Origin: Macrostomum lignano
Lineage: Eukaryota
DNA: 37,407 nucleotides
Direction of reading: 5' to 3'
Assembly (NCBI GenBank): GCA_002269645.1
Contig: NIVC01003446.1
Span: 1 to 37,407, forward strand
Within the stretch, counting starts at the first letter, position 1. Every line of letters begins with the position of its first letter. Shown one piece after another: positions 1 through 34,097 of the stretch. The notes beneath the pieces were generated by a model that saw nothing but the letters and a program-made list of their open reading frames with translations, did not search any database and was not told the origin of the DNA. A program made the translations under genes and the position numbers.

Positions 1-3000
1 TGTCTGGCAGTATGGGTGTCTGGTAGTGTGGCTGTCTGGCAGTGTGGGTGTCTGGTAGTGTGGGTGTCTGGCAGTGTGGGTGTCTGGTAGTGTGGTGTCT
101 GGCAGTGTGGGTGTCTGGTAGTTGGGTGTCTGGTAGTGTGGCTGTCTGGTAGTGTGAGTTTCTGGTAGTGTGGTGTCTGGCAGTATGGGTGTCTGGTAGT
201 GTGGTGTCTGGTAGTGTTGGTGTCTGGCAGTGTGGGTGTCTGGTAGTGTGGTGTCTGGTAGTGAGGGTGTCTGGTAGTTGGTGTCTGGTAGTGTGGCTGT
301 CTGTAGTGTGGCTTTCTGGCAGTGTGGGTGTCTGGTAGTGTGGGTGTCTGGCAGTGTGGGTGTCTGGTAGTGTGGGTGTCTGGTAGTGTTGGTGTCTGGC
401 AGTATGGGTGTCTGTAGTGTGGGTGTCTAGCAGTGTGGGTGTCTGGTAGTGTGGGTGTCTGGCAGTGTGGGTGTCTGGCAGTATGGGTGTCTGGTAGTGT
501 GGGTGTCTGGTAGTGTTGGTGTCTGGCAGTGTGGGTGTCTGGTAGTGTGGGTGTCTGGTAGTGTGTGTGTCTGGCAGTGTTGGTGTCTGGTAGTGTTGGT
601 GTCTGGTAGTGTTGGTGTCTGGCAGTGTGGGTGTCTGGTAGTGTTGGTGTCTGTAGTGAGGGTGTCTGGTAGTGTTGGTGTCTGTAGTGTGGGTGTCTGG
701 CAGTGTGGGTGTCTGGTAGTGTGGGTGTCTGGTATAGTGTGGGTGTCTGGCAGTGTGGGTGTCTGGTAGTGTTGGTGTCTGGCAGTGTGGGTGTCTGGTA
801 GTGTGGTGTCTGGCAGTGTGGGTGTCTGGTAGTGTGGGTGTCTGGCAGTGTGGGTGTCTGGTAGTGTGGGTGTCTGGTAGTGTGGTGTCTGGCAGTGTTG
901 GTGTCTGGTAGTGTGGGTGTCTGGTAGTGTGAGTGTCTGGTAGTGTTGGTGTCTGGTAGTGTTGGTGTCTGGTAGTGTGGATGTCTGGTAGTGTTGGTGT
1001 CTGGCAGTGTGGTGTCTGGTAGTGTGGGTGTCTGTTAGTGTGGTGCTGCAGTATGGGTGTCTGGTAGTGTGGTGTCTGGCAGTGTGGGTGTCTGGTAGTG
1101 TGGGTGTCTGGCAGTGTGGGTGTCTGGTAGTGTGGGTGTCTGGCAGTGTGGGTGTCTGGTAGTGTTGGTGTCTGGCAGTGTGGGTGTCTGGTAGTGTTGG
1201 TGTCTGGTAGTGTTGGTGTCTGGCAGTGTGGGGTGTGGAGGTGTCTGGTAGTGTGGGTGTCTGGCAGTTTGGTGTCTGGCAGTGTGGGTGTCTGGTAGTG
1301 TTGGTGTCTGGCAGTGTGGGTGTCTGGTAGTGTTGGTGTCTGGTAGTGGGGTGTCTGGTAGTGTTGGTGTCTGGTAGTGTTGGTGTCTGGCAGTGTGGGT
1401 GTCTGGTAGTGTTGGTGTCTGGTAGTGTGGTGTCTGGTAGTGTGGGTGTCTGGTAGTTGGGTGTCTGGCAGTGTGTGTCTGGTAGTGTGGTGTCTGGCAG
1501 TGTGGGTGTCTGGTAGTGTGGTGTCTGGCAGTGTGGGTGTCTAGCAGTGTGGGTGTCTGGTAGTGTTAGTGTCTGGCAGTATGGGTGTCTGGTAGTGTTG
1601 GTGTCTGGTAGTGTTGGTGTCTGGCAGTATGGGTGTCTGGTAGTGTGGTGTCTGGCAGTGTGGTGTCTGGTAGTGTTGGTGTCTGGTAGTGTTGGTGTCT
1701 GGTAGTGTGGTGTCTGGTAGTGTTGGTGTCTGGTAGTGTTGGTGTCTGGCAGTGTGGGTGTCTGGTAGTGTGGGTGTCTGGCAGTATGGGTGTCTGGTAG
1801 TGTTGGTGTCTGGTAGTGTGGGTGTCTGGTAGTGTGGTGTCTGTAGTGTGGGTGTCTGGCAGTGTGGGTGTCTGGTAGTGTGGTGTCTGGCAGTGTGGGT
1901 GTCTGGTAGTGTTGGTGTCTGGTAGTGTTGGTGTCTGGCAGTGTGGGTGTCTGGTAGTGTGTTTTCTGGCAGTATGGGTGTCTGGTAGTGTGGCTGTCTG
2001 GCAGTGTGGGTGTCTGGTAGTGTGGTGTCTGGTATGTTGGTGTCTGGTAGTGCTGGTGTCTGGTAGTGTGGGTGTCTGGCAGTATGGGTGTCTGGTAGTG
2101 TGGGTGTCTGGCAGTATGGGTGTCTGGTAGTGTGGCTGTCTGGCAGTGTGGGCGTCTGGTAGTGTTGGTGTCTGGCAGTGTGGGTGTCTGGTAGTGTGGG
2201 TGTCTGGTAGTGTGGGTGTCTGGTAGTGTGGTGTCTGGTAGTGTTGGTGTCTGGCAGTGTGGGTGTCTGGCAGTGTGGGTGTCTGCAGTGTGGGTGTCTA
2301 GCAGTTGGGTGTCTGGTAGTGTTGGTGTCTGGCAGTATGGGTGTCTGGTAGTGTTGGTGTCTGGTAGTGTTGGTGTCTGGCAGTGTGGGTGTCTGTAGTG
2401 TGGGTGTCTGGCAGTGTGGGTGTCTGGTAGTGTGGGTGTCTGGGTATGTGGTGTCTGGTAGTGTTGGTGTCTGGTAGTGTGGGTGTCTGTTAGTGTGGGT
2501 GTCTGGCAGTATGGGTGTCTGGTAGTGTTGGTGTCTGGTAGTGTGGGTGTCTGGTAGTGTGGGTGTCTGGTAGTGTTGGTGTCTGGTAGTGTTGGTGTCT
2601 GGCAGTGTGGTGTCTGGTAGTGTGGGTCTGGCAGTGTGGGTGTCTGGTAGTGTGGTGTCTGGCAGTGTGGGTGTCTGGTAGTGTGGGTGTCTGGTAGTGG
2701 GTGTCTGGTAGTGTGGTGTCTGGTAGTGTGGGTGTCTGGCAGTATGGGTGTCTGGTAGTGTGGGTGTCTGGCAGTATGGGTGTCTGGTAGTGTGGCTGTC
2801 TGGCAGTGTTGGTGTCTGGTAGTGTGGGTGTCTGGTAGTGTGGTGTCTGGTAGTGGGTGTCTGGCAGTTGGGTGTCTGGTAGTGTGGGTGTCTGGCAGTA
2901 TGGGTGTCTGGTAGTGTTGGTGTCTGGTAGTGTGGGTGTCTGGTAGTGTGGGTGTCTGGCAGTGTGGGTGTCTGGTAGTGTTGGTGTCTGGCAGTGTGGG

Positions 3001-5945
3001 TGTCTGGTAGTGTGGGTGTCTGGTAGTGTGGTGTCTGGTAGTGTTGGTGTCTGGCAGTATGGGTGTCTGGTATGGGTGTCTGGTAGTGTGGGTGTCTGGC
3101 AGTGTGGGTGTCTGGTAGTGTGGTGTCTGGTAGTGTTGGTGTCTGGTAGTGTTGGTGTCTGGTAGTGTAAGTTTTTGGTAGTGTTGGTGTCTGGCAGTAT
3201 GGGTGTCTGGTAGTGTGGGTGTCTGGTAGTGTGGGTGTCTGGTAGTGTGGGTGTCTGGTAGTGTTGGTGTCTGGTAGTGTGGGTGTCTGGTAGTGTTGGT
3301 GTCTGGCAGTATGGGTGTCTGGTAGTGTGGTGTCTGGTAGTGTGGGTGTCTGGTAGTGTGGGTGTCTGGCAGTGTGGGTGTCTGGTAGTGTGGGTGTCTG
3401 GCAGTGTGGGTGTCTGGTAGTGTGGGTGTCTGGTAGTGTTGGTGTCTGGTAGTGTGAGTTTCTGGTAGTGTGGGTGTCTGGCAGTATGGGTGTCTGGTAG
3501 TGTGGGTGTCTGGTAGTGTTGGTGTCTGGCAGTGTGGGTGTCTGGTAGTGTTGGTGTCTGGTAGTGAGGGTGTCTGGTAGTGTTGGTGTCTGGTAGTGTG
3601 GCTGTCTGGTAGTGTGGCTTCTGGCAGTGTGGGTGTCTGGTAGTGTGGTGTCTGGCAGTGTGGGTGTCTGGTAGTGTGGGTGTCTGGTAGTGTTGGTGTC
3701 TGGCAGTATGGGTGTCTGGTAGTGTGGGTGTCTAGCAGTGTGGGTGTCTGGTAGTGTGGGTGTCTGGCAGTGTGGGTGTCTGGCAGTGTCGGTGTCTGGT
3801 AGTGTTGGTGTCTGGTAGTGTTGGTGTCTGGCAGTGTGGGTGTCTGGTAGTGTGGGTGTCTGGTAGTGTGTGTGTCTGGCAGTGTTGGTGTCTGGTAGTG
3901 TTGGTGTCTGGTAGTGTTGGTGTCTGGCAGTGTGGGTGTCTGGTAGTGTTGGTGTCTGGTAGTGAGGGTGTCTGGTAGTGTTGGTGTCTGGTAGTGTGGT
4001 GTCTGGCAGTGTGGTGTCTGGTAGTGTGGGTGTCTGGTAGTGTGGGTGTCTGGCAGTGTGGGTGTCTGGCAGTGTTGGTGTCTGGCAGTATGGGTGTCTG
4101 GTAGTGTGGGTGTCTAGCAGTGTGGGTGTCTGGTAGTGTGGGTGTCTGGCAGTGTGGGTGTCTGGTAGTGTGGGTGTCTGGTAGTGTGGGTGTCTGGCAG
4201 TGTGGGTGTCTGGTAGTGTGGGTGTCTGGTAGTGTGGGTGTCTGGTAGTGTTGGTGTCTGGTAGTGTTGGTGTCTGGTAGTGTTGGTGTCTGGCAGTGTG
4301 GGTGTCTGGTAGTGTGGGTGTCTGTTAGTGTGGGTGTCTGGCAGTATGGGTGTCTGGTAGTGTGGGTGTCTGGCAGTGTGGGTGTCTGGTAGTGTGGGTG
4401 TCTGGCAGTGTGGGTGTCTGGTAGTGTGGGTGTCTGGCAGTGTGGGTGTCTGGTAGTGTTGGTGTCTGGCAGTGTGGGTGTCTGGTAGTGTGGTGTCTGG
4501 TAGTGTTGGTGTCTGGCAGTGTGGGTGTCTGGTAGTGTTGGTGTCTGGCAGTGTTGGTGTCTGGCAGTGTGGGTGTCTGGTAGTGTTGGTGTCTGGCAGT
4601 GTGGGTGTCTGGTAGTGTGGGTGTCTGGCAGTATGGGTGTCTGGTAGTGTTGGTGTCTGGTAGTGTGGTGTCTGGTAGTGTTGGTGACTGGTAGTGTTGG
4701 TGTCTGGTAGTGTGGTGTCTGGTAGTGTTGGTGTCTGGTAGTGTTGGTGTCTGGCAGTGTCGGTGTCTGGTAGTGTTGGTGTCTGGCAGTGTCGGTGTCT
4801 GGCAGTGTGGGTGTCTGGTAGTGTTGGTGTCTGGTAGTGTGGGTGTCTGGCAGTGTGGGTGTCTGTTAGTGTGGGTGTCTGGCAGTATGGGTGTCTGGTA
4901 GTGTGGGTGTCTGGCAGTATGGGTGTCTGGTAGTGTTGGTGTCTGGTAGTGTGGGTGTCTGATAGTGTGGGTGTCTGGCAGTGTGGGTGTCTGGTAGTGT
5001 TGGTGTCTGGCAGTGTGGGTGTCTGGTAGTGTGGGTGTCTGGTAGTGTTGGTGTCTGGTAGTGTTGGTGTCTGGCAGTGTGGGTGTCTGGTAGTGTGGGT
5101 GTCTGTTAGTGTGGGTGTCTGGCAGTATGGGTGTCTGGTAGTGTGGGTGTCTGGCAGTGTGGGTGTCTGGTAGTGTGGGTGTCTGGCAGTGTGGGTGTCT
5201 GGTAGTGTGGGTGTCTGGCAGTGTGGGTGTCTGGTAGTGTTGGTGTCTGGCAGTGTGGGTGTCTGGTAGTGTGGGTGTCTGGTAGTGTTGGTGTCTGGCA
5301 GTGTGGTGTCTGGCAGTGTAGGTGTCTGGTAGTGTGGTGTCTGGTAGTGTGGGTGTCTGTAGTGTGGGTGTCTGGTAATGTGGGTGTCTGGTAGTGTGGG
5401 TGTCTGGAAGTGTGGGTGTCTGGTAGTGTTGGTGTCTGGTAGTGTGGGTGTCTGGTATTGTGGGTGTCTGGTAGTGTTAGTGCCTTGGTAGTGTGGGTGT
5501 CTGGTAGTGTGGGTGTCTGGTAGTGTGGGTGTCTGGTATTGTGGGTGTCTGGTAGTGTTAGTGCCTTGGTAGTGTGCATGCCTTGGTAGTGTGGGTGTCT
5601 GGCAGTGTGGATGCCTTGGTAGTGTGGGTGTCTGGTAGTGTGGGTGTCTGGTAGTGTTAGTGCCTTGGTAGTGTGCATGCCTTGGTAGTGTTGGTGTCTG
5701 GCAGTGTGGATGCCTTGGTAGTGTGGGTGTCTGGTAGTGTTAGTGCCTTGGTAGTGTGCATGCCTTGGTAGTGTGGGTGTCTGGCAGTGTGGATGCCTTG
5801 GTAGTGTGGGTGTCTGGTAGTGTGGGTGTCTGGTAGTGTTAGTGCCTTGGTAGTGTGCATGCCTTGGTAGTGTGGTTGTCTGGCAGTGTGGATGCCTTGG
5901 TAGTGTGGGTGTCTGGCAGTGTGGATGCCTTGGTAGTGTGGGTGT
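1..5945. repeat. Satellite with ~16-bp unit (GGTGTCTGGTAGTGTG and variants), probably inside a PHTF intron
   Basis: Directly visible. The upstream PHTF exon is missing from the window, so an intronic position is inferred. Confidence 0.95.
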
Positions 5946-6017: not shown

Positions 6018-12470
<6,453 letters not shown>

Positions 12471-16165: not shown

Positions 16166-16702
16166 CGGCATTCAATGGACGATCAAAATATCACTCGCCA
16201 TTGGATGAGGGTTTCTGAATTTGAACTCTGATTTGCTGGTGGCTGAGTCGAACGTTTTCACTCGATGCTCACTCCATGCTCTCCAAATGCTGCTCAGATG
16301 CAGGCACTACGCAAACTTTTGACTGCATCTGGTTTCTTGGCGAGCCCAGACGCCAAATCAAAAAGTACAAGCGCCTTGACTCGGTCAAGAATTGGATAAG
16401 CCAGCCAACTCTGATTTAATCAATTCTGCAATTTCATGCCTTCAAACCTCTCCTGTGACCGGGACAGATTTGAGTCAGAGAGAAAAACAAAGAAAGCTTA
16501 TCTGTGTCTGCTATCTGTTGCCGAGTGGTCACGCTGGACGGTGGCGGGCCTGCTTGAGTTTGAATGGACCTTTGAACTGCACACTCGGGCTGGCATGCTT
16601 GATAAGCGCTCTCGGCGGGGTTGAGGCAAGAAAGCAGATCGCAGACAGGTTTTTCAGCGAGCGAGAAAAACTCTTGTTGCAGATCAAATCCCGAGATCAG
16701 CC

Positions 16703-18369
16703 ATGTCTAATGGGTTCGGTTTGTCCACCGCGGCCGCCGCGGATCTCAAAGCTCCACTGCCGCTGAATGCCGACGCCGAAGTCGGGTTTGAGGAGGCGCA
16801 GCAGTCGGCGTCGCCGAATGTCGATATCGGAGCTGGCGACATGTCGGCCCAGCTGGAAGTGAAGCTGGGCAGCGGCGACCGGGCTGATGAGCGTGTGGAG
16901 CCAGCGTCTAATGGGAGTCTGCGAGAGTCCGGTGATGAAGCTAAGGTTCAGGATGCTGGGGAGAAACCTCAAGGTCAGACTCCTAAAGCTACTGAGCAGC
17001 CTAAAGGTCAAACTACTGGAGCAAATGAGAAGCCTGAAGGTCAGACTCCTGAAGCTAATGAGAAGCCTGAAGGTCAGACTCCTGAAGCTAATGAGAAGCC
17101 TGAAGATCAGACACCTGAAGCTAATGAGAAGCCTGAAGGTCAGACTACTGAAGCTAATGAGAAGCCTGAAGGTCAGACTTCTGAAGCTAATGACAGGCCT
17201 GAAGGTCAGACTCCTGAAGCTAATGAGAAGCCTGAAGGTCATATTCCTGAAGCTACTGAGCAGCCTGAAGGTCAGACTACTGAAGCAAATGAGAAGCCTG
17301 AAGGTCAGACTCCTGAAGCTAATGAGAAGCCTGAAGGTCAGACTCCTGAAGCTAATGAGAAGCCTGAAGGTCAGACTCCTGAAGCTAATGAGAAGCCTGA
17401 AAGTCAGACACCTGAAGCTAATGAGAAGCCTGAAGGTCAGACACCTGAAGCTAATGAGAAGCCTGAAGGTCAGACTCCTGAAGCTAATGAGAAGCCTGAA
17501 GGTCAGACTCCTGAAGCTAATGAGAAGCCTGAAGGTCAGACACCTGAGCCGTCAGAGAAGCCTGAACCTCAATCAAAGCCTGAACCCCAGACTCCTGAGC
17601 CGTCAGAGAGGCCTGAACCTGAATCGAAGCCTGAAACCCAGACTCCCAAGGCTTCCCAAGAGACGCATACCCAAGCTGAACCGTCAGCTTCCAAAAGAGC
17701 AGAGAACAGAAGCAGAAATCCGGACCAAAGGAAGAGCAGCGAAGGTGAACCGGCCGAGAGCCAACGCGGCTTCAGAATCTTCGGCATCGAATTCGCGCCG
17801 CTCAATACGCCGATGCGCCGACGCCTGCAGACTCTGGCGGTGCTGCAGTGGCTGCTGTCCATCACCGTGATGCCCATCATCTGCGTGCTGTTCATCATGA
17901 TGACCCTGCTGACCCCGCTGGCTCCGCTGTCTCTGGCCTATGTCGCTTGGATATTTTTCTTCGACCGCAACACGTCGCAGCGCGGCGGCCGGCGCCTCGA
18001 GCGCGTGCGCCGCTGGTCGCTGTGGCGCCACTACCGGGATTATTTTCCCATCCGGCTGGTGAAGTCCGCCGACCTGGACCCCGCGCACAACTACCTGATC
18101 GGCTACCATCCGCACGGCATCATCAGCTGCGGCGCCTTCTGCAACTTCGGCACCGAGGCCACCGGCTTCAGCGCCAAGTTCCCCGGCATCAAGCCGTACC
18201 TGCTGACCCTACGGATAAACTTCTTCTGGCCGCTGCTGCGCGGCTACTTCATGTCTGTGGGCGTGTGCGACGTCAGCAGGAGCAGCCTGCGCTGGATTCT
18301 CGGCCGCGAGGGCGGCGGCAATGCCGCTATAGTCGTGGTCGGAGGGGCTCAGGAGGCTCTGGATGCCAG
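16703..18369 (+). CDS. DGAT2/MOGAT: DGAT2/MOGAT exon 1
   Basis: ORF 16703-18373, donor ag|gtgaat. The start codon is less certain than the catalytic core. Confidence 0.85.
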
Positions 18370-19622
18370 GTGAATGATTGGTGAACTCAGTGCCAGGTGT
18401 GAATGATTGGTGAACTCAGTGCCAGGTGTGAATGATTGGTGAACTCAGTGCCAGGTGTGAATGATTGGTGAACTCAGTGCCAGGTGTGAATGATTGGTGA
18501 ACTCAGTGCCAGGTGTGAATGATTGGTGAACTCAGTGCCAGGTGTGAATGATTGGTGAACTCAGTGCCAGGTGTGAATGATTGGTGAACTCAGTGCCAGG
18601 TGTGAATGATTGGTGAACTCAGTGCCAGGTGTGAATGATTGGTGAACTCAGTGCCAGGTGTGAATGATTGGTGAACTCAGTGCCAGGTGTGAATGATTAG
18701 TGAACTCAGTGCCAGGTGTGAATGATTTGTGAACTGGGTTGCCGGGTGTGAATGATTGGTGAACTCAGTGCCAGGTGTGAATGATTGGTGAACTCAGTGC
18801 CAGGTGTGAATGATTGGTGAATTCAGTGCCCGATGTGAATGATTGGTGAACTCAGTGTCAGTGTGAATGATTTGTGAACTGGGTTGCCGGGTGTGAATGA
18901 TTAGTGAACTCAGTGCCAGGTGTGAATGATTTGTGAACTGGGTTGCCGGGTGTGAATGATTGGTGAACTCAGTGCCAGGTGTGAATGATTGGTGAACTCA
19001 GTGCCAGGTGTGAATGATTGGTGAACTCAGTGTCAGTGTGAATGATTTGTGAACTGGGTTGCCGGGTGTGAATGATTTGTGAACTAGCTCTGTCTGCAAT
19101 GCAATTCAATTCAATCATTGCGCAAGGCCCGGCAACTACAAGCTGACGCTGCTGAAGCGCAAAGGGTTCGCCCGGATGGCCCTGCAGACGGGGGCCCACC
19201 TGGTGCCCTGCTTCAGCTTCGGCGAGAACGACCTGTTCAGGCAGGCGGCCAACCCGCCAGGGTCCTGGGTTCGAGCGTTCCAGCAGATCTTCAAGGTGAG
19301 CCTAAGAAAAGGATTCACTGCGTGTACACGGCAACATCAAAACTCCTCAAAACTTCTTCCTCTTCCCCAGGGTGCCCTGGGCTCCTCTCCGCCGTTCTTC
19401 TACGGCCGCGGCGTGTTCAACTACACCTTCGGGCTGCTGCCTTACCGCCACGCGGTCACCACGGTGGTTGGCGCGCCAATCCCGGTGGAGAAGTGCCCGG
19501 AGCCCAGCGCTGAGCAGGTGGACCGGCTGCACCGCCTGTACATGGAGCGGCTGGCCGACCTGTTCGACGAGTTCAAGGCTGAGCACGGGGTGAAGGAAGA
19601 CGTCCGGCTTGAGTTCGTCTGA
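16703..19622 (+). CDS. DGAT2/MOGAT: Diacylglycerol/monoacylglycerol O-acyltransferase (DGAT2/MOGAT family), ~695 aa with a long repetitive N-terminus. Exons 16703-18369, 19127-19295, 19371-19622.
   Basis: Motifs [69 protein letters not shown]. Intron phases (2 and 0) join correctly. Substrate class (DGAT vs MGAT) cannot be assigned from sequence alone. Confidence 0.93.
16961..17656 (+). repeat. Coding 33-bp minisatellite: 18 x [11 protein letters not shown] plus two 51-bp (17-aa) derived units
   Basis: In frame within the DGAT2/MOGAT exon 1 ORF. Counted from the translation. Confidence 0.92.
18364..19085. repeat. 29-bp minisatellite (TGCCAGGTGTGAATGATTGGTGAACTCAG), DGAT2/MOGAT intron 1
   Basis: Directly visible. 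Begins at the exon/intron junction. Confidence 0.95.
19127..19295 (+). CDS. DGAT2/MOGAT: DGAT2/MOGAT exon 2 ([15 protein letters not shown]...QQIFK)
   Basis: Acceptor cgcaag (AAG), donor gtgagc. Restores the conserved ARPG motif. Confidence 0.88.
19371..19622 (+). CDS. DGAT2/MOGAT: DGAT2/MOGAT exon 3
   Basis: Acceptor cttcctcttccccag. [14 protein letters not shown]...LEFV*. Confidence 0.9.
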   Translation, partial: GALGSSPPFFYGRGVFNYTFGLLPYRHAVTTVVGAPIPVEKCPEPSAEQVDRLHRLYMERLADLFDEFKAEHGVKEDVRLEFV

Positions 19623-27914: not shown

Positions 27915-30900
27915 CTGGGGCGGGCGGGAGTCAGCAGCTTTATATACTGCATAGAATAGTATTTTTAGCATATGGATTGCTGAATTGCCCGTGCTTCCCA
28001 TGAGTAGGCAAATACTGTGCCTGTCTAATGTACTGTACCTGTCCAATACCTGACTAATAATACTGTGCCTGTCCAATACCTGACTAATAATACTGCACCT
28101 GTCCAATACCTGACTAATAATACTGTACGTGTCCAATACCTGACTAATAATACTGTACCTGTCCAATACCTGACTAATAATACTGTACCTGACTAATACC
28201 TGACTAATAATACTGAACCTGTCCAATACCTGACTAATAATACTGTACCTGTCCAATACCTGACTAATAATACTGTGCCTGTCCAATACCTGACTAATAA
28301 TACTGTACCTGACTAATACCTGACTAATAATACTGTGCCTGTCCAATACCTGACTAATAATACTGTACCTGTCCAATACCTGACTAATAATACTGTACCT
28401 GACTAGAAATTTTGAAATTATTAAGCAAATTTATAAGAGAGCTCGAACTCGCGACCGCCTACCCACCTGTGGCCATAGACAATAACGCCAAGCCGGTGCA
28501 GAGAGGCCCGGAAGTACTGCGTATTGACCTCCAGCTGCTTGAGCCGCCTGGCGCCCTCTCCGGGTGGGCCGGCCCGGCCCATCAACATCTGGAAGGCGGT
28601 GACCACCTGGGCGGCCACAGGGGCTGGCAGGGAGGCTCCGTAGAGGCCGCTGTGACTGCGCTGGCGCAGCAGCGCAACGAGGTGCTGGCTTCCGGCGATG
28701 TAACCGCCAGCTCCGCCGAAGCTCTTCGTGAAGGTGCCCATCAGGACGTCGACGTCTCTGGGATCGCAGCCGAAATAGTCCACTACGCCTCGGCCGTGAG
28801 GCCCATGGCCCCGATGGAGTGCGCCTCGTCCAGGTACAAGTACGCTTTGTACTTCTTCTTCAAGGCGATTAGTTCCGGCAGGCGGGTGACACTGCCCTCC
28901 ATGCTGTAGACGCCCTCCACCTGGGTTGGGAGGAACGGGAGCGACTGGCTTTTAAGTTCAACTGTACCGGTATACCCTTACTCTGCACCGAAGTGGGCTC
29001 ATGGGTTATCTAGACTGGACATCTGGGAACCGGAAGTGGGCTCATGGGTCATTCAGACTGGACATCTCACATCTGGAAACCGGAAGTGGGCCCATGGGTC
29101 ATCCGGACTGGACATCTGGAAACCGGAAGTGGGCCCATGGGTCATCTAGACTGGACATCTGGGAACCGGAAGTGGGCTCATGGGTATCTAGACTAGACAT
29201 CCAGGAACCGGAAGTGGGCTCATGGGTCATCTAGACTGGACATCTGGAAACCGAAAGTGGGCTTATGGATCATCCAGACTGGACATCTGGAAACCGGAAG
29301 TGGGCTCATGGGTCATCCACACTGGACATCTAGGAACCAGAAGTGGACTCATGGGTCATCCCCAATGGACACATGGAAACCGGAAGTAGGCTCATGGGTC
29401 ATCTAGACTGGACATCTGGGAACCGGAAGTGGGCTCATGGGTCATCCACACTGGACATCTGGGAACCGGAAATGGGCTCATGGGTCATCCACACTGGACA
29501 TCTGGGAACCGGAAGTGGCCTCATGGGTAATCCACACTGGACGTCTGGGAACCGAACACAGAATATTCTGTGGAACCGAAATTGGGCTCGTAGGTCATCC
29601 AGAACCATAGACAACAGGAATTGAGCTGGGTGAGACGAAGACTACCCAAAAGCTCACCACAATAAGAATCTTTTTAAACGGTCGCCTAGTCCTATCCTGG
29701 CCATAGACAATGGCGTCCCTCAGCTTGGCCTCCACATCGGCTATGTCGTTATGCCTGAACACTTTGATCTTAGCGCCAGTGAGGCGGGCACCCAGCACCA
29801 GAGAGCTATGGTTGAGCTCGTCGGAGAGCACGCAGCAGCCTTTGCCAATGAGGGCTGGCATGTTCAAGGCGTTAGTGGCGAATCCCATCGGGAAGATGAT
29901 GGCGTCCTCGGCGCCGACAAACTCGGCCACAGTGGCTTCGAGCCGGGTGTGCAGGTCCAGGTTGCCGGCCTCTGCGCGCGGGCTGCCGACTCCGCAGCCG
30001 AACGTCTCGGTGGCAGCGGCCGCGGCGTCGGCGCAGGGGCCGTCGGTCTCGGCGAAGCCCAGATAATTATAGCTGCCGAAGTTGATGGCCCGCGTGTGCG
30101 TGCCCGGGTACTCGAAGCTCCAGCCGTGGTCGGGGCTTTTCCGGTCGATCAGCTCAAACTCGGCGCCCGGGCAGGTGCGGATCGGCCGGTTCCAGCAGTC
30201 CCGGATTCGCCGGTACAAATTGCGGGTGTAGAAGGACTCGAAGTTTTGGTAGAGCGGCACGAAGTCCTGAGGGATCGGGAGTGAAGGCTGCGATTTGAAT
30301 TTCTTTTCTGGGGTCTTCCGATCGTTCGCTTTTAAAAGCTTAAAACTTCATAAGGCCCCAGTGACTGAGATCCGCTCTCCCAGTGTCTGAGATCCCCTCT
30401 CCCAGTGTCTGAGATCCCCTCTCCTAGTGTCTTAGACTCCCTCCCAGTTTCTGAGATCTCGTCTCCCAGTGTGAATATCCCCCCTCCCAGTGTCTGAGAT
30501 CCCCTCTCCCAGTGTCTGAGATCCCCTCTCCCAGTGTCTGAGATCCCCTCTCCTAGTGTCTTAGACTCCCTCCCAGTTTCTGAGATCTCGTCTCCCAGTG
30601 TGAATATCCCCCCTCCCAGTGTCTGAGATCCCCTCTCCCAGTTTTTGAGATCCCCTCTCCCAGTTTCTGAGATATCCTCTCCCAGTGTCAGAGATCTCCC
30701 CTCCCAGAGTCTGAGATCCCTACTCCCAGTTTCTGAGATATCCTCTCCCAGTGTCTGAGATCCCCTCTCCCAGTGTCTGAGATCCAAATACTCGGTCTCA
30801 GGCAAAGACTCTCAGATGGTTTAGATCCATCAAATTTTACTCAAATTCTTATTGACACAAAAAAGTTCATTTGTGTCAAACATCAATTTGCTGTTTACTA

Positions 30901-31166
30901 GAGCTACATAGGGTTGAAACTGTGAGTAATTTGGAGCAAGATAAACGACGCATTACAATGTCAGAGATAGCAGCTTATCAAACAAAATCTACTGCGCACA
31001 CCTTAGTCCTGGCCGGCTCAGTGGCAATCAGGTTCTTCTCGAAGCCATGGTTTCTTAGAAAATCGCGCATGTGGCCAAACACGGCCAACATGACGTAGCC
31101 AATGTAGGTGATGATGGCCACAACATAGGGTGTGGGTTCAAATTGCTCTTCGTGCTCTACTGACAT
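27467..31166 (-). CDS. SPTLC2: Serine palmitoyltransferase long-chain base subunit 2 (SPTLC2/3, LCB2), ~558 aa. Exons 31166-31002, 30266-29658, 28920-28467, 27914-27467. One base is missing at ~28793-28797.
   Basis: Motifs [64 protein letters not shown]-lysine motif [26 protein letters not shown]. Introns are GT-AG with consistent phases. Confidence 0.95.
28010..28405. repeat. 30-bp minisatellite (CTGTCCAATACCTGACTAATAATACTGTAC), SPTLC2 last intron
   Basis: Directly visible. Confidence 0.93.
28467..28920 (-). CDS. SPTLC2: SPTLC2 exon with PLP-binding lysine and apparent 1-bp deletion
   Basis: VEGVYSMEG...AMGLT is in one frame and GRGVVDYFG...GTFTKSFG in the adjacent frame. Donor ag|gtgggt. 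Confidence 0.92.
28990..29600. repeat. 43-bp degenerate minisatellite (GGAAGTGGGCTCATGGGTCATCTAGACTGGACATCTGGGAACC), SPTLC2 intron
   Basis: Directly visible, about 14 diverged copies. Confidence 0.9.
29658..30266 (-). CDS. SPTLC2: SPTLC2 exon (DFVPLYQNF...KKILIV)
   Basis: Acceptor ccctcag, donor gtgagc, 203 codons. Confidence 0.93.
30358..30790. repeat. 22-bp minisatellite (CTCCCAGTGTCTGAGATCCCCT) with a 129-bp block duplication, SPTLC2 intron
   Basis: The variant block starting CTCCTAG recurs at 30421 and 30550. Confidence 0.88.
31002..31166 (-). CDS. SPTLC2: SPTLC2 first coding exon seen ([13 protein letters not shown]...EPARTK)
   Basis: ORF 30978-31166, donor aag|gtgtgc. An upstream exon cannot be excluded. 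Confidence 0.85.
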
Positions 31167-34097
31167 CTTGGGGCTGCAGATTTAGTTGCAATTTGAGTCT
31201 GTTGTGATTCAAAATCAAATGCATTTGACCTGAATATTCAGGGTTTCATCGGACATTTTTTAACTACTAGTATTGCTAATGCACCTTTCAAAATAGCAAA
31301 ACTTGCGAATTCACAAACATTGTTACATCAAATTGCAGTACAATTTTTGAATTGATTAAATTTTTAGCACCAAACTTTATTAAAAAAAAATTTAATAGAT
31401 AAGAAGTATTACATATTTATTAGAATGTTTCATCTAAAAAATGCCAGATACTTGTTAGATATATATCATATATGCACAACACCTGGCCAAGCCAGCCAAT
31501 CTGGCTTGCAAGTCACCTAGCCAAGGTAAGCTGCAAAAATTCCTATCCAAAAATATAGAATTAGTAGTACTAATTAAATGGCAATGCTTTTAGCCTTAAT
31601 TAACAATATAGTTATAGACTATATAGACTATAAATTCTATAGACTACTCCTGCCATTTACCCAAAGTTACATTTTTGGTAAAAAAAGTTGCATAGGCCAT
31701 AGCCAATATAAATCAGGGGGGGGGGTGCACATGTATGTATATTACACTTTTTGATACATAATGAATAATACTATCTATTATACCATACTCCAAATGATGT
31801 AGTATATGTCCAAAAATTTGGGCATTCATTGGCCCTGCATGCCATAACTAGGTGTGCATCGTTGGCATGCATCACTCCTAAGAAAATAGTATGTGAGCAT
31901 ACTTGGCGTGCACTTTATAGAATCACATGTAAGAGTTATTGGAAAGTCAAAAATTTGAAAAAAAAATTTTTAAGCATAAATTTCAAGCTTTCTGGTGTTT
32001 CAAGCATGTAAAAAAGTATTTAAACAAATCTTTGCATGTATCTATTTTATGTTGTAAATAGTATTGCCAAAAAAGCATAAAAATCAACCAAATTCTGTTA
32101 ATAGGGTTCTATTTATGCAATTTAAAAAGGTAATTTATAGTCACAATGTAAAAAAGGTCATGCATCTCTTTAAATGCAAATATGGTAGGGCATCCAATGA
32201 TCATATTTATAGCCTAGGCCTAGTATTTGCAAAAATTAAAAAGGTGAAAAAGGGGTTTTCTTTAAATGGCTATAACCTTTTCAATATTTAGGTCTTACTA
32301 TATGGCAATGTTTTAGTTCTACTATATATTGTATATGGTAAAAATATAATATAGACCCTAATAGAATATAACATAAGGCCTACAGTAAATAAATATCATA
32401 AGAGCTTTATGTACTTTTATAGTTTTATAGACAATACATTTTTTAACTTGCTGTAATCTATCTATAGGCCTATTCTTCTCAAATATACACTATTTTTGGA
32501 ATAAACTCTTAAATGCAAAGTGCAACAAGGTCCTTGAAGCAATCTAATGCCATAGCCCAGGCCATAGCCTTTATATATACTAATATACCACGTACAATAA
32601 TGCACATTACATTAAATAAAATATAATAATATATATAATATATAATAATATATATAATAAAACAATCGTAATTCAACATTAAACACATCACAAATGTCAC
32701 GCAAATCCCATGCAAATGTATATGCTACAAATTATGTGTAGCCAAGCCAATTTTTAAATCACTTTTTTGTCAATTTAAATCAATTTTTTAAATCACAAAA
32801 CTAAAGTAAGCAAAAATATTAGGACCCAAAAGAAAAGAGGACCCAAAAGGGATTCAATTGTAAAAATCACGAAGCCCATTTTCAGTGGGACTGTGCATTT
32901 AAAAAAAATAAAATTACGAGTGACATGCAACACTGCTGCCACTGCTCCGCGCGGGCGGACTTTCTATAGTTGTAGAGGCTCTCTCGGGTGTTGAATGAGA
33001 CTTCAAAAGAACGCAAACGACAAATCTTGCGCTTAGGAAACAAACTAAACAGTAAAAATAAAATTAAATTTTGATTAAAATACAGGTCTTCTGGCGCTAA
33101 GAAGCTTTTGTTCAGTTTATTAAGTAATGCCTATAAGCATTACGATGTATATTGTTAAAACTAGTCAAACGTAGAGTAATTATTTAGGAGCCAACAAGTT
33201 GAGTCAGAAAATTACAACTTTTAAAGATCAAATTGTCTAGTTGGTTATTTAAGTTATAAATTGTGATTGCTCAGTAGTATAAAATTTAAACGTCTCAGAA
33301 ATTGATCACAATTCCACATAGAGCCGCCGGAATTATTTCGGAGCAGTAACACAAATTATAAATTATAAATTCAGAACTTTCTTAGAAACCAACCAAGCGC
33401 CTAAAAAGTTTTTACTTGCTTACATTTTTGTTGTTTTATGGTATTATTTAATGTATAATTATTTACAATGTTCATTCCTTTAATTCTTGCAATACTTTTT
33501 AACAAGTAGGTTTGCGATTGACAACACACTACTTTATGTCAAACTTGATTCACTTTTTGTTAGAAGACAGGACAGGCTAACTGTCTTGACATCAGGAATT
33601 TAAAAAGTCAAAATATTTTTGCGATTGCGAAGTGTGCATATGACTCTTGACTGTTAAATGATTTTCGAATTACAGTAGTCCCAAAAAGTCAATTTTCAGT
33701 ATTAAATTAAAATAGGGAATTAGGTAATAAGATATCACAAAATAGTTTGCTGTTTAATCTGACTATGTCTTATGATTATGAATGACTGAATGTATTATCT
33801 TTAATATAAAATAGGACAAAATTATGAATAAAAAAGTATTGTTAAACCTTTGATTATTGAAGCTTACAATATATGATTGTTTTATTGTGTTTGTTTCCTG
33901 TGCTAATTTAACTTTTCAATTTGCTTGGCTAAATAATATGTTTTCATCTTTTTCTTTGAATTCAAGCAAAAGCTTATCTGATTAGACCCATGGAAAACAT
34001 AAAGAATTTTACTTTTTGGTAACTTTTGTATGCCAGACTGAATTTTATATGATACCTTTCCACTTTTTAGCTTAATATTTAAAATCAGATAACTGCA

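Follow-up and report, generated by a model that had tools for sequence, protein, structure and literature searches.

An in-frame minisatellite in a MOGAT-like gene of Macrostomum lignano probably encodes an acidic N-terminal tail

Exon 1 of a MOGAT-like gene of the DGAT2 family in the free-living flatworm Macrostomum lignano contains a 33-bp minisatellite that lies in the same open frame as the conserved acyltransferase core. The gene is on contig NIVC01003446.1 of assembly GCA_002269645.1 (Mlig_3_7), and the window, that is, the stretch of DNA that we analyzed, is this whole contig of 37,407 bp. We put a probability of roughly 65% on the reading that the array is a genuine coding minisatellite, or variable number tandem repeat (VNTR), which is young, probably near-neutral, and located in a dispensable cytosolic tail of the enzyme.

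The enzyme core and the in-frame array

The gene has three exons on the forward strand (16703-19622), and the product is 695 aa long. The spliced model matches the GenBank hypothetical protein BOX15_Mlig028465g1 with 100% identity and 100% coverage, and the coding sequence (CDS) recorded for that protein is also 16703-19622. Exon 1 (16703-18369) is a single open frame from the ATG to the donor CAG/GTGAAT (a slash marks a splice site here and below). Within this frame, 86 unique codons are followed by 18 units of 33 bp, 2 units of 51 bp, a linker of 38 codons, and the conserved core. Thus, a first-pass annotation of the window was right in stating that the array is in frame with the coding-like segment on its 5' side and with the catalytic core after it.

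The same annotation had identified the enzyme as a DGAT2/MOGAT acyltransferase, and the family profile agrees: residues 400-694 align with positions 2-296 of the 297 in Pfam's DAGAT model (PF03982), with a score of 388.6 bits as compared to a cutoff of 22. The motifs that have been defined for the family (PMC3075658) are present as well. HPHG (H469-P470-H471-G472) lies in invariant columns of the alignment, as do F448 and P449 of the YFP motif, and its Y447 is also present. The motif RxGFx(K/R)xAxxxGxx(L/V)VPxxxFG(E/Q) is encoded by exon 2 and occupies residues 567-589. EFAPL is found at aa 363-367; A365 is near-invariant across the family alignment, and P370 is invariant. All three exons are intact and have canonical splice sites, and every family-invariant residue is present.

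We also predicted the structure of the protein with AlphaFold2, using an alignment of 37 sequences. The predicted local distance difference test (pLDDT) score is above 90 for most of residues 370-695, including predicted helices at 371-388, 390-402, and 407-419. Hydropathy is above 1.6 where the scanning window is centered on residues 384-411, which coincides with the predicted helices at 371-419. These results fit an N-terminal transmembrane hairpin that is predicted within the core, with its orientation taken from the topology of the family (PMC3075658). The best matches of the predicted core to folds in the PDB are the acyltransferases PlsC, PatA, LpxM, and GPAT1; a sequence search found no solved structure from the family.

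The nearest named relatives are 2-acylglycerol O-acyltransferases from animals (49-61% identity), and fungal enzymes of the Dga1 type are 34-43% identical. Nearly all of the top 120 matches carry the names MOGAT1, MOGAT2, or MOGAT3. Among the nearest relatives are P0073 (61% identical, 342 aa) and P0008 (57% identical, 420 aa), which come from a Logan run and from metatranscriptomes; the Macrostomum spliced leader was not found at the 5' ends of these two sequences. Judged by its closest relatives and by EFAPL, the protein is a MOGAT-like member of the DGAT2 family, which is a placement by sequence from which a preference for mono- or diacylglycerol cannot be read.

Tandem Repeats Finder reports the 33-bp array at 16961-17566 (18.4 copies, 91% matches, 0% indels, and a score of 993), along with an overlapping 51-bp array at 17524-17646 (2.4 copies). 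When read in the frame of the ATG at 16703, the region divides into 18 units of 33 bp (16961-17554), which encode an 11-aa consensus peptide, and two derivative units of 17 aa (17555-17656). The number of units, their coordinates, and their frame had all been given correctly at the first pass. The DNA consensus of the 33-bp unit is GAGAAGCCTGAAGGTCAGACTCCTGAAGCTAAT; 7 of the 18 units are identical to it, and 8 of the 18 encode the exact consensus peptide. The consensus has 15 matches with at most 3 mismatches, while 0 are expected from 100 shuffles. When unit 18 is aligned to the first 51-bp unit, 30 of 33 positions are identical and there is a single 18-bp gap, so the 33- and 51-bp units differ by one hexapeptide of the KPEPQ(S/T) type. 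The most diverged units are the two at the 5' end and the last one. Because seven central units are identical and the edge units have diverged, the expansion appears to be recent, as had been proposed.

Frame 1 has no stop codons over 16703-17786. Both unit lengths (33 and 51 bp) are multiples of 3, and the units are in the same frame as both of the coding flanks. The array is about 600 bp long, with unique sequence on either side. The first-pass annotation stated that the units of most other arrays in the window are not multiples of 3, which is true of 12 of the 16 arrays; the exceptions include arrays with units of 36, 30, and 18 bp.

The tail (aa 1-356, with EFAPL beginning at aa 363) has an isoelectric point (pI) of 4.34, a net charge of -46, a mass of 37.9 kDa, and no hydrophobic segment. 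The pI of the core is 9.8. Of the 26 lysines in the tail, 18 are followed by proline, and trypsin would hardly cut the array. In the AlphaFold2 model, the tail has pLDDT below 50 and no secondary structure up to about residue 340. As anticipated at the first pass, then, the tail is acidic, and it is predicted to be disordered. We considered whether the tail might contain a Mucin-like domain (PF16058), but the match of the protein (24.1 bits) is under the gathering score (28.7 bits), and we take it as a compositional resemblance only. The codons of the array tend to end in A or T and those of the core in G or C, also as noted earlier: the GC content at third codon positions (GC3) falls from 0.65 in the unique N-terminus to 0.27 in the array, and the 51-bp units (0.47) and the linker (0.53) are intermediate, whereas the parts of the core that are encoded by exons 1, 2, and 3 have values of 0.87, 0.93, and 0.89, respectively. 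The features of the gene are listed in Table 1.

Table 1. Features of the MOGAT-like gene and its 5' flank
Feature	Position	Strand	Evidence or remarks
Acceptor-like motifs TTTCAG and TTGCAG	16652-16657, 16677-16682	+	Match [T/C]TNCAG (PMC8629364); candidate spliced-leader trans-splice sites
Unique N-terminal segment, aa 1-86	16703-16960	+	ATG 16703 in context GCCATGT; 0 stops in frame 1
33-bp minisatellite (probably coding), 18 units, aa 87-284	16961-17554	+	Tandem Repeats Finder and in-register units
Two 51-bp (17-aa) units, aa 285-318	17555-17656	+	51-bp period; one 18-bp indel from the 33-bp unit
Hydrophilic unique linker, aa 319-356	17657-17770	+	0 stops in frame 1; GC3 0.53; CTTCAG 17770-17775 at 3' edge
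Start of conserved core in exon 1 (EFAPL region, predicted transmembrane hairpin, YFP, HPHG)	17771-18369	+	Pfam DAGAT; GC3 0.87
Intron 1, GT...AG	18370-19126	+	Filled by 29-bp minisatellite, 18370-19085
Exon 2, with RxGFx(K/R)xAxxxGxx(L/V)VPxxxFG(E/Q)	19127-19295	+	Splice model; identical to GenBank protein; GC3 0.93
Intron 2, 75 bp, GTGAGC...CCCCAG	19296-19370	+	Splice model
Exon 3, stop codon 19620-19622	19371-19622	+	Splice model; identical to GenBank protein; GC3 0.89

Translation of the array

The array is likely to be translated as part of the enzyme. The frame of the gene has an ATG at codon 1, another at codon 47, and then none until codon 371. Since codon 371 lies past EFAPL, the near-invariant A365, and the invariant P370, these conserved residues can be translated only from a start 5' of the array, unless there is an in-frame splice. 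The ATG at 16703 has a purine at -3, and the nearest upstream in-frame stop is at 16622, or 81 nt before it. The two acceptor-like motifs in Table 1 lie 20-45 nt 5' of this ATG. Both the acceptor motif for trans-splicing in M. lignano ([T/C]TNCAG) and the sequence of the spliced leader, which has an AUG at its 3' end, have been reported (PMC8629364). If splicing occurred at 16658, this terminal AUG would be in frame with the open reading frame (ORF) and would add 15 residues before Met1.

The unique segment of 86 codons also looks like coding sequence. It has no stops in frame 1, whereas the two other forward frames have 2 and 8. The GC content at its three codon positions is 0.73, 0.49, and 0.65; the excess at the first position over the second is coding-like, and GC3 is above the non-coding background of 0.43-0.49.

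The annotation of Mlig_3_7 was built from RNA-seq transcripts (StringTie/TACO); spliced-leader and poly(A) sites that had been mapped by experiment set the points at which these transcripts were cut, and TransDecoder then supplied the ORFs (PMC5730564). In the model that this RNA-guided pipeline gave for the gene, the array is kept: the transcript was not cut at a point 3' of it, and it was not removed as an intron. In addition, a gene model from the independent ML2 assembly of M. lignano (P0005) joins the first 52 aa to the linker and the core, and the linker is also found in another ML2 model (P0180), although both models read the sequence in mixed frames. Because the N-terminus, linker, and core are linked in ML2 as well, a chimeric contig is less likely. 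The first 52 residues of P0005 have 6 differences from the window, and the next 60 residues, from the core, are identical. P0005 and P0180 reflect either a second, diverged copy of the gene or errors in the ML2 assembly.

Several observations weigh against translation of the array. First, an open frame through the array is weak evidence of coding, because 7 of the 16 arrays on the contig, which serve as a control, have at least one stop-free frame. Frame +2 of the 33-bp array is open too, and arrays of the contig that are clearly non-coding are traversed by ORFs of 350-700 codons (up to 703). Second, the GC3 of the tail (0.27-0.65) is far below that of the core (0.87-0.93) and that of the conserved exons of two neighboring genes, PHTF1/2 (0.92) and an aminotransferase (0.81). 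Third, no purifying selection was seen among the units: the ratio of synonymous to non-synonymous differences from the consensus was 10:22, versus 21:73 for neutral change (binomial P = 0.12). This comparison does not discriminate between frames, as frame +2 gives 9:23, which is close to the ratio for frame 1. Fourth, the array is skipped in P0005, a frame-scrambled model in which aa 52 is followed directly by the last 51-bp unit. Fifth, a homology search of a protein collection, with the unique N-terminus plus the linker and the start of the core as the query, found P0005 and P0180 only; Macrostomum RNA contigs were not among the matches. Finally, TransDecoder picks long ORFs, and the CDS in GenBank is not proof of translation. 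A full-text search of the literature for Mlig028465 found no mention of it.

If these observations are taken at face value, then the array might lie outside the mature coding mRNA, in an outron, a 5' untranslated region, or an intron. A start of the mRNA downstream of the array, or trans- or cis-splicing there, would then leave a real enzyme of about 325-340 aa, which is close to the 334-342 aa of typical relatives. Trans-splicing affects about 30-39% of M. lignano genes (PMC8629364, PMC5730564), and non-coding sequence would also account for the unusual GC3, for the neutral variation among the units, and for the likeness to other arrays of the contig, which are non-coding yet often open in a frame. 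The first-pass annotation had named CTTCAG at 17770-17775 as a place where the mRNA might be spliced in downstream of the repeat. We examined this site as a potential start of the mRNA. It does fit the trans-splice acceptor motif, and it is the sole [T/C]TNCAG between the array and EFAPL. However, an mRNA that began at 17776 would be in phase 2, with the AUG of the spliced leader out of frame and leading into a dead end of 31 codons (stop at 17868-17870). The first usable ATG would then be codon 371, and the conserved stretch from EFAPL to P370 would be lost. Therefore, we judged CTTCAG to be unlikely as the start. Nor was an in-frame consensus acceptor found between the array and EFAPL. Transcripts with a mapped spliced-leader peak are cut there by the pipeline, and yet the CDS begins at 16703; the plausible context of that ATG, with its two acceptor-like motifs, and the 86-codon segment, which is open in the frame of the gene alone among the forward frames, are also hard to reconcile with a downstream start. 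Overall, we think that a location outside the mature coding mRNA is rather unlikely.

Another possibility, which we consider quite improbable, is that the array is coding but is variably spliced out as an "exitron," with the length of the tail set by splicing as well as by the genomic copy number. No GT[A/G]AG donor was found within 16703-17030. A relaxed scan for donors found only AAG/GTCAGA, which occurs in every unit (at 16974 and then each 33 bp to 17535) and scores 7/9, versus 8/9 for the true donors. If these donor-like sites were joined to the in-frame acceptors at 17555 (CCGTCAG/), 17606, 17687, or 17702, then aa 91-284, 91-301, 91-328, or 91-333 would be removed, and the jump in P0005 might reflect an event of this kind. 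However, the candidate acceptors have weak pyrimidine tracts, and the RNA-guided model in Mlig_3_7 has no such intron. As for P0005, it changes frame repeatedly and looks like a gene finder's workaround on an error-prone assembly.

Lastly, we give very little credence to an assembly artefact (with the copy number or junctions of the array mis-assembled) or to a decaying, non-functional duplicate: although 51% of the contig is minisatellite, Mlig_3_7 holds 180-312 Mb of duplicated sequence (PMC5730564), and the exact protein is found on one contig only, the gene has intact exons with canonical splice sites, all of the family-invariant residues, and GC3 of about 0.9, the array is short and is flanked by unique sequence, and the ML2 assembly independently links the parts of the gene.

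Comparison with relatives and known systems

To place the tail among its relatives, we used 133 family members whose alignments reach the start of the core. Their offset to the start of EFAPL has a median of -2 aa, a 75th percentile of 8, and a 90th percentile of 89, which agrees with the earlier statement that family members start near EFAPL. The 356-aa tail is the longest in this sample, and the longest other extension is 304 aa. The fraction of repeated 5-mers is 0.43 in the M. lignano tail, 0.14 in the next protein (which has a poly-Glu run and is from Priapulus), and 0.00 in almost all of the others. By this measure of sequence, the tail is the only repeat-built one among these relatives.

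An exhaustive phmmer search with the tail against 1.84 billion representative proteins gave 188 hits, just one of which is a true relative. This is the ML2 model P0005, which matches residues 1-54, so the search found no homologue of the tail outside M. lignano. The other 187 hits appear to be unrelated; the six that we inspected are low-complexity repeat proteins with a period of 11 residues, and none of them is a DGAT2.

Animal MOGAT-like enzymes, such as the vertebrate 2-acylglycerol O-acyltransferases 1, 2, and 3, resemble the M. lignano core in x-EFAPL-xxP-xRRLQT, the hairpin, YFP, HPHG, and RKGF...VP...FGE. However, these enzymes typically start 1-3 residues before EFAPL, whereas the M. 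lignano protein has 356 additional residues and has no ATG at the usual start.

Long N-terminal extensions have been described elsewhere in the family. DGAT2 from Neurospora crassa has a hydrophilic extension of 243 aa without homology to known polypeptides, and its removal raised activity in maize; TaDGAT2 from Thraustochytrium aureum has a hydrophilic extension of about 200 aa that is homologous to nothing (PMC3733143). Activity does not depend on the extensions of these enzymes or on the tails of yeast Dga1, and it can even be inhibited by them (PMC3733143; PMC3075658). These extensions resemble the M. lignano tail in that they are hydrophilic, lineage specific, and precede the first transmembrane segment. 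Relatives in our sample with long extensions of this kind include P0018 (304 aa), P0023 (224 aa), and P0021 (156 aa). However, extensions of the Neurospora type are not tandem repeats (their fraction of repeated 5-mers is 0.00), and they belong to fungi and protists and to the DGAT2-proper branch rather than to the animal MOGAT-like branch.

The first-pass annotation did not recognize the architecture from any described family member. This stands in that we found no other member with a repeat-built tail, but it goes too far in that long hydrophilic extensions were already on record for DGAT2s (PMC3733143). What is new is the repeat-built tail, and not the presence of an N-terminal extension.

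Shorter acidic tails are present in four other MOGAT-like proteins: P0088 from Priapulus caudatus (90 aa, charge -23), P0013 (117 aa, -22), P0011 (137 aa, -23), and P0008 (79 aa, -6). As in M. lignano, these tails are of low complexity and lie directly before a hydrophobic-G-[IV]-EFAP junction. Compared with the M. lignano tail, to which they have no sequence kinship, they are shorter by a factor of 3-4, and they contain poly-E runs or loose repeats at most. Judging from these sequences, an acidic cytosolic tail would therefore be a recurrent minority feature of the MOGAT-like branch, in invertebrates or protists.

Mucin-type VNTR exons are another case in which coding minisatellites build disordered regions of proteins. 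Also, according to one report (PMC9879509), the tandem repeats of Borg elements have units that are multiples of 3 nt, are recent, nearly perfect, and lineage specific, and encode disordered sequence of low complexity. The M. lignano array, if it is translated, shares these properties with both the Borg repeats and the mucin VNTRs. It differs in that it belongs to a eukaryotic metabolic enzyme of the membrane. Mucin-type glycosylation would not be expected on the M. lignano tail if, as the topology of the family suggests, the tail is cytosolic.

Proposed origin, possible effects, and the rest of the contig

Simple and tandem repeats make up about 15% of the genome of M. lignano (PMC5730564), and the abundance of minisatellites on this contig (16 arrays, 51% of its length) is in line with that figure. 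We propose that a short motif that is rich in Pro and Glu, of the KPEPQ(T/S) type, was already present inside a hydrophilic N-terminal tail. Replication slippage or unequal exchange would have amplified this motif, with 51-bp units forming before the 33-bp units, and the same process may have filled the rest of the contig as well as intron 1 of this gene. The expansion could persist because its unit is a multiple of 3 and is stop-free in the frame of the gene and because it fell in a dispensable tail that tolerates change. The low GC3 of the tail and the neutral variation of the units suggest that it is a young, weakly constrained coding sequence.

In the topology that has been described for the DGAT2 family, both termini are cytosolic, and catalysis can largely do without the N-terminal tail (PMC3075658; PMC3733143). 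Thus, the tail should be cytosolic. The product would be an acyltransferase of about 76 kDa at the endoplasmic reticulum (ER) or on lipid droplets, with a core that works as usual and a 38-kDa cytosolic tail that is acidic, proline rich, and disordered. Most likely, the tail is a near-neutral passenger that is tolerated rather than useful. At most, it may act as an acidic entropic spacer or as a solubility "bristle" that modulates the stability of the enzyme or its localization to the ER or lipid droplets.

It is doubtful, but conceivable, that the tail has a function as an acidic disordered domain of polymorphic length, with the copy number of the repeat tuning the partitioning of the enzyme between ER and lipid droplets, its turnover, or its oligomerization. 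The genome would then be routinely minting disordered segments from arrays whose units are multiples of 3, as has been reported for Borg elements. If so, this gene would be a tractable test case in an animal with RNA interference and transgenesis. Both methods are established in M. lignano (PMC5730564), so full-length and tail-less versions of the enzyme could be compared in vivo.

If the tail is translated, as we think is probable, then this gene is a clear animal example of how a genome-wide minisatellite process can extend a conserved metabolic enzyme of the membrane by about 38 kDa of new disordered sequence and yet leave it intact. The gene would also be a case for asking how young coding sequences with low GC3 and little constraint arise and whether the long N-terminal extensions that recur independently in the DGAT2 family do anything. 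The wider significance is limited by precedent: coding VNTRs and dispensable N-termini of DGAT2s are both known, and the protein has already been deposited, as "hypothetical."

The 29-bp minisatellite of intron 1 starts exactly at the 5' splice site, and every unit copies the end of the exon along with the donor. TGCCAG/GTG occurs 18 times in this region, as 1 real site and 17 tandem copies. The copies of the donor read GTGTGA, and the true donor reads GTGAAT. Use of a copy would insert a multiple of 29 nt with TGA codons, so the spliceosome must choose the first site.

Elsewhere on the contig, the 16 arrays have periods of 14-52 bp, and several of them are strongly strand-asymmetric: the GC skew is 0.68 over 1-5945 and is up to 1.0 over 10260-12006. 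An AT-rich island at about 31000-34000 (GC content of 0.28-0.35, as compared to about 50% elsewhere) has no long ORFs and no match in Rfam, and no Rfam match was found in the rest of the window either. GenBank has a gene call at about 7310-9735, for a protein of 246 aa with no Pfam match. Exons of two other genes lie in the regions 6587-7579 (forward strand) and 29595-30260 (reverse strand) and encode the N-terminal domain of PHTF1/2 (PF12129, E = 2.5e-13) and a class I/II aminotransferase (PF00155, E = 3e-16), respectively.

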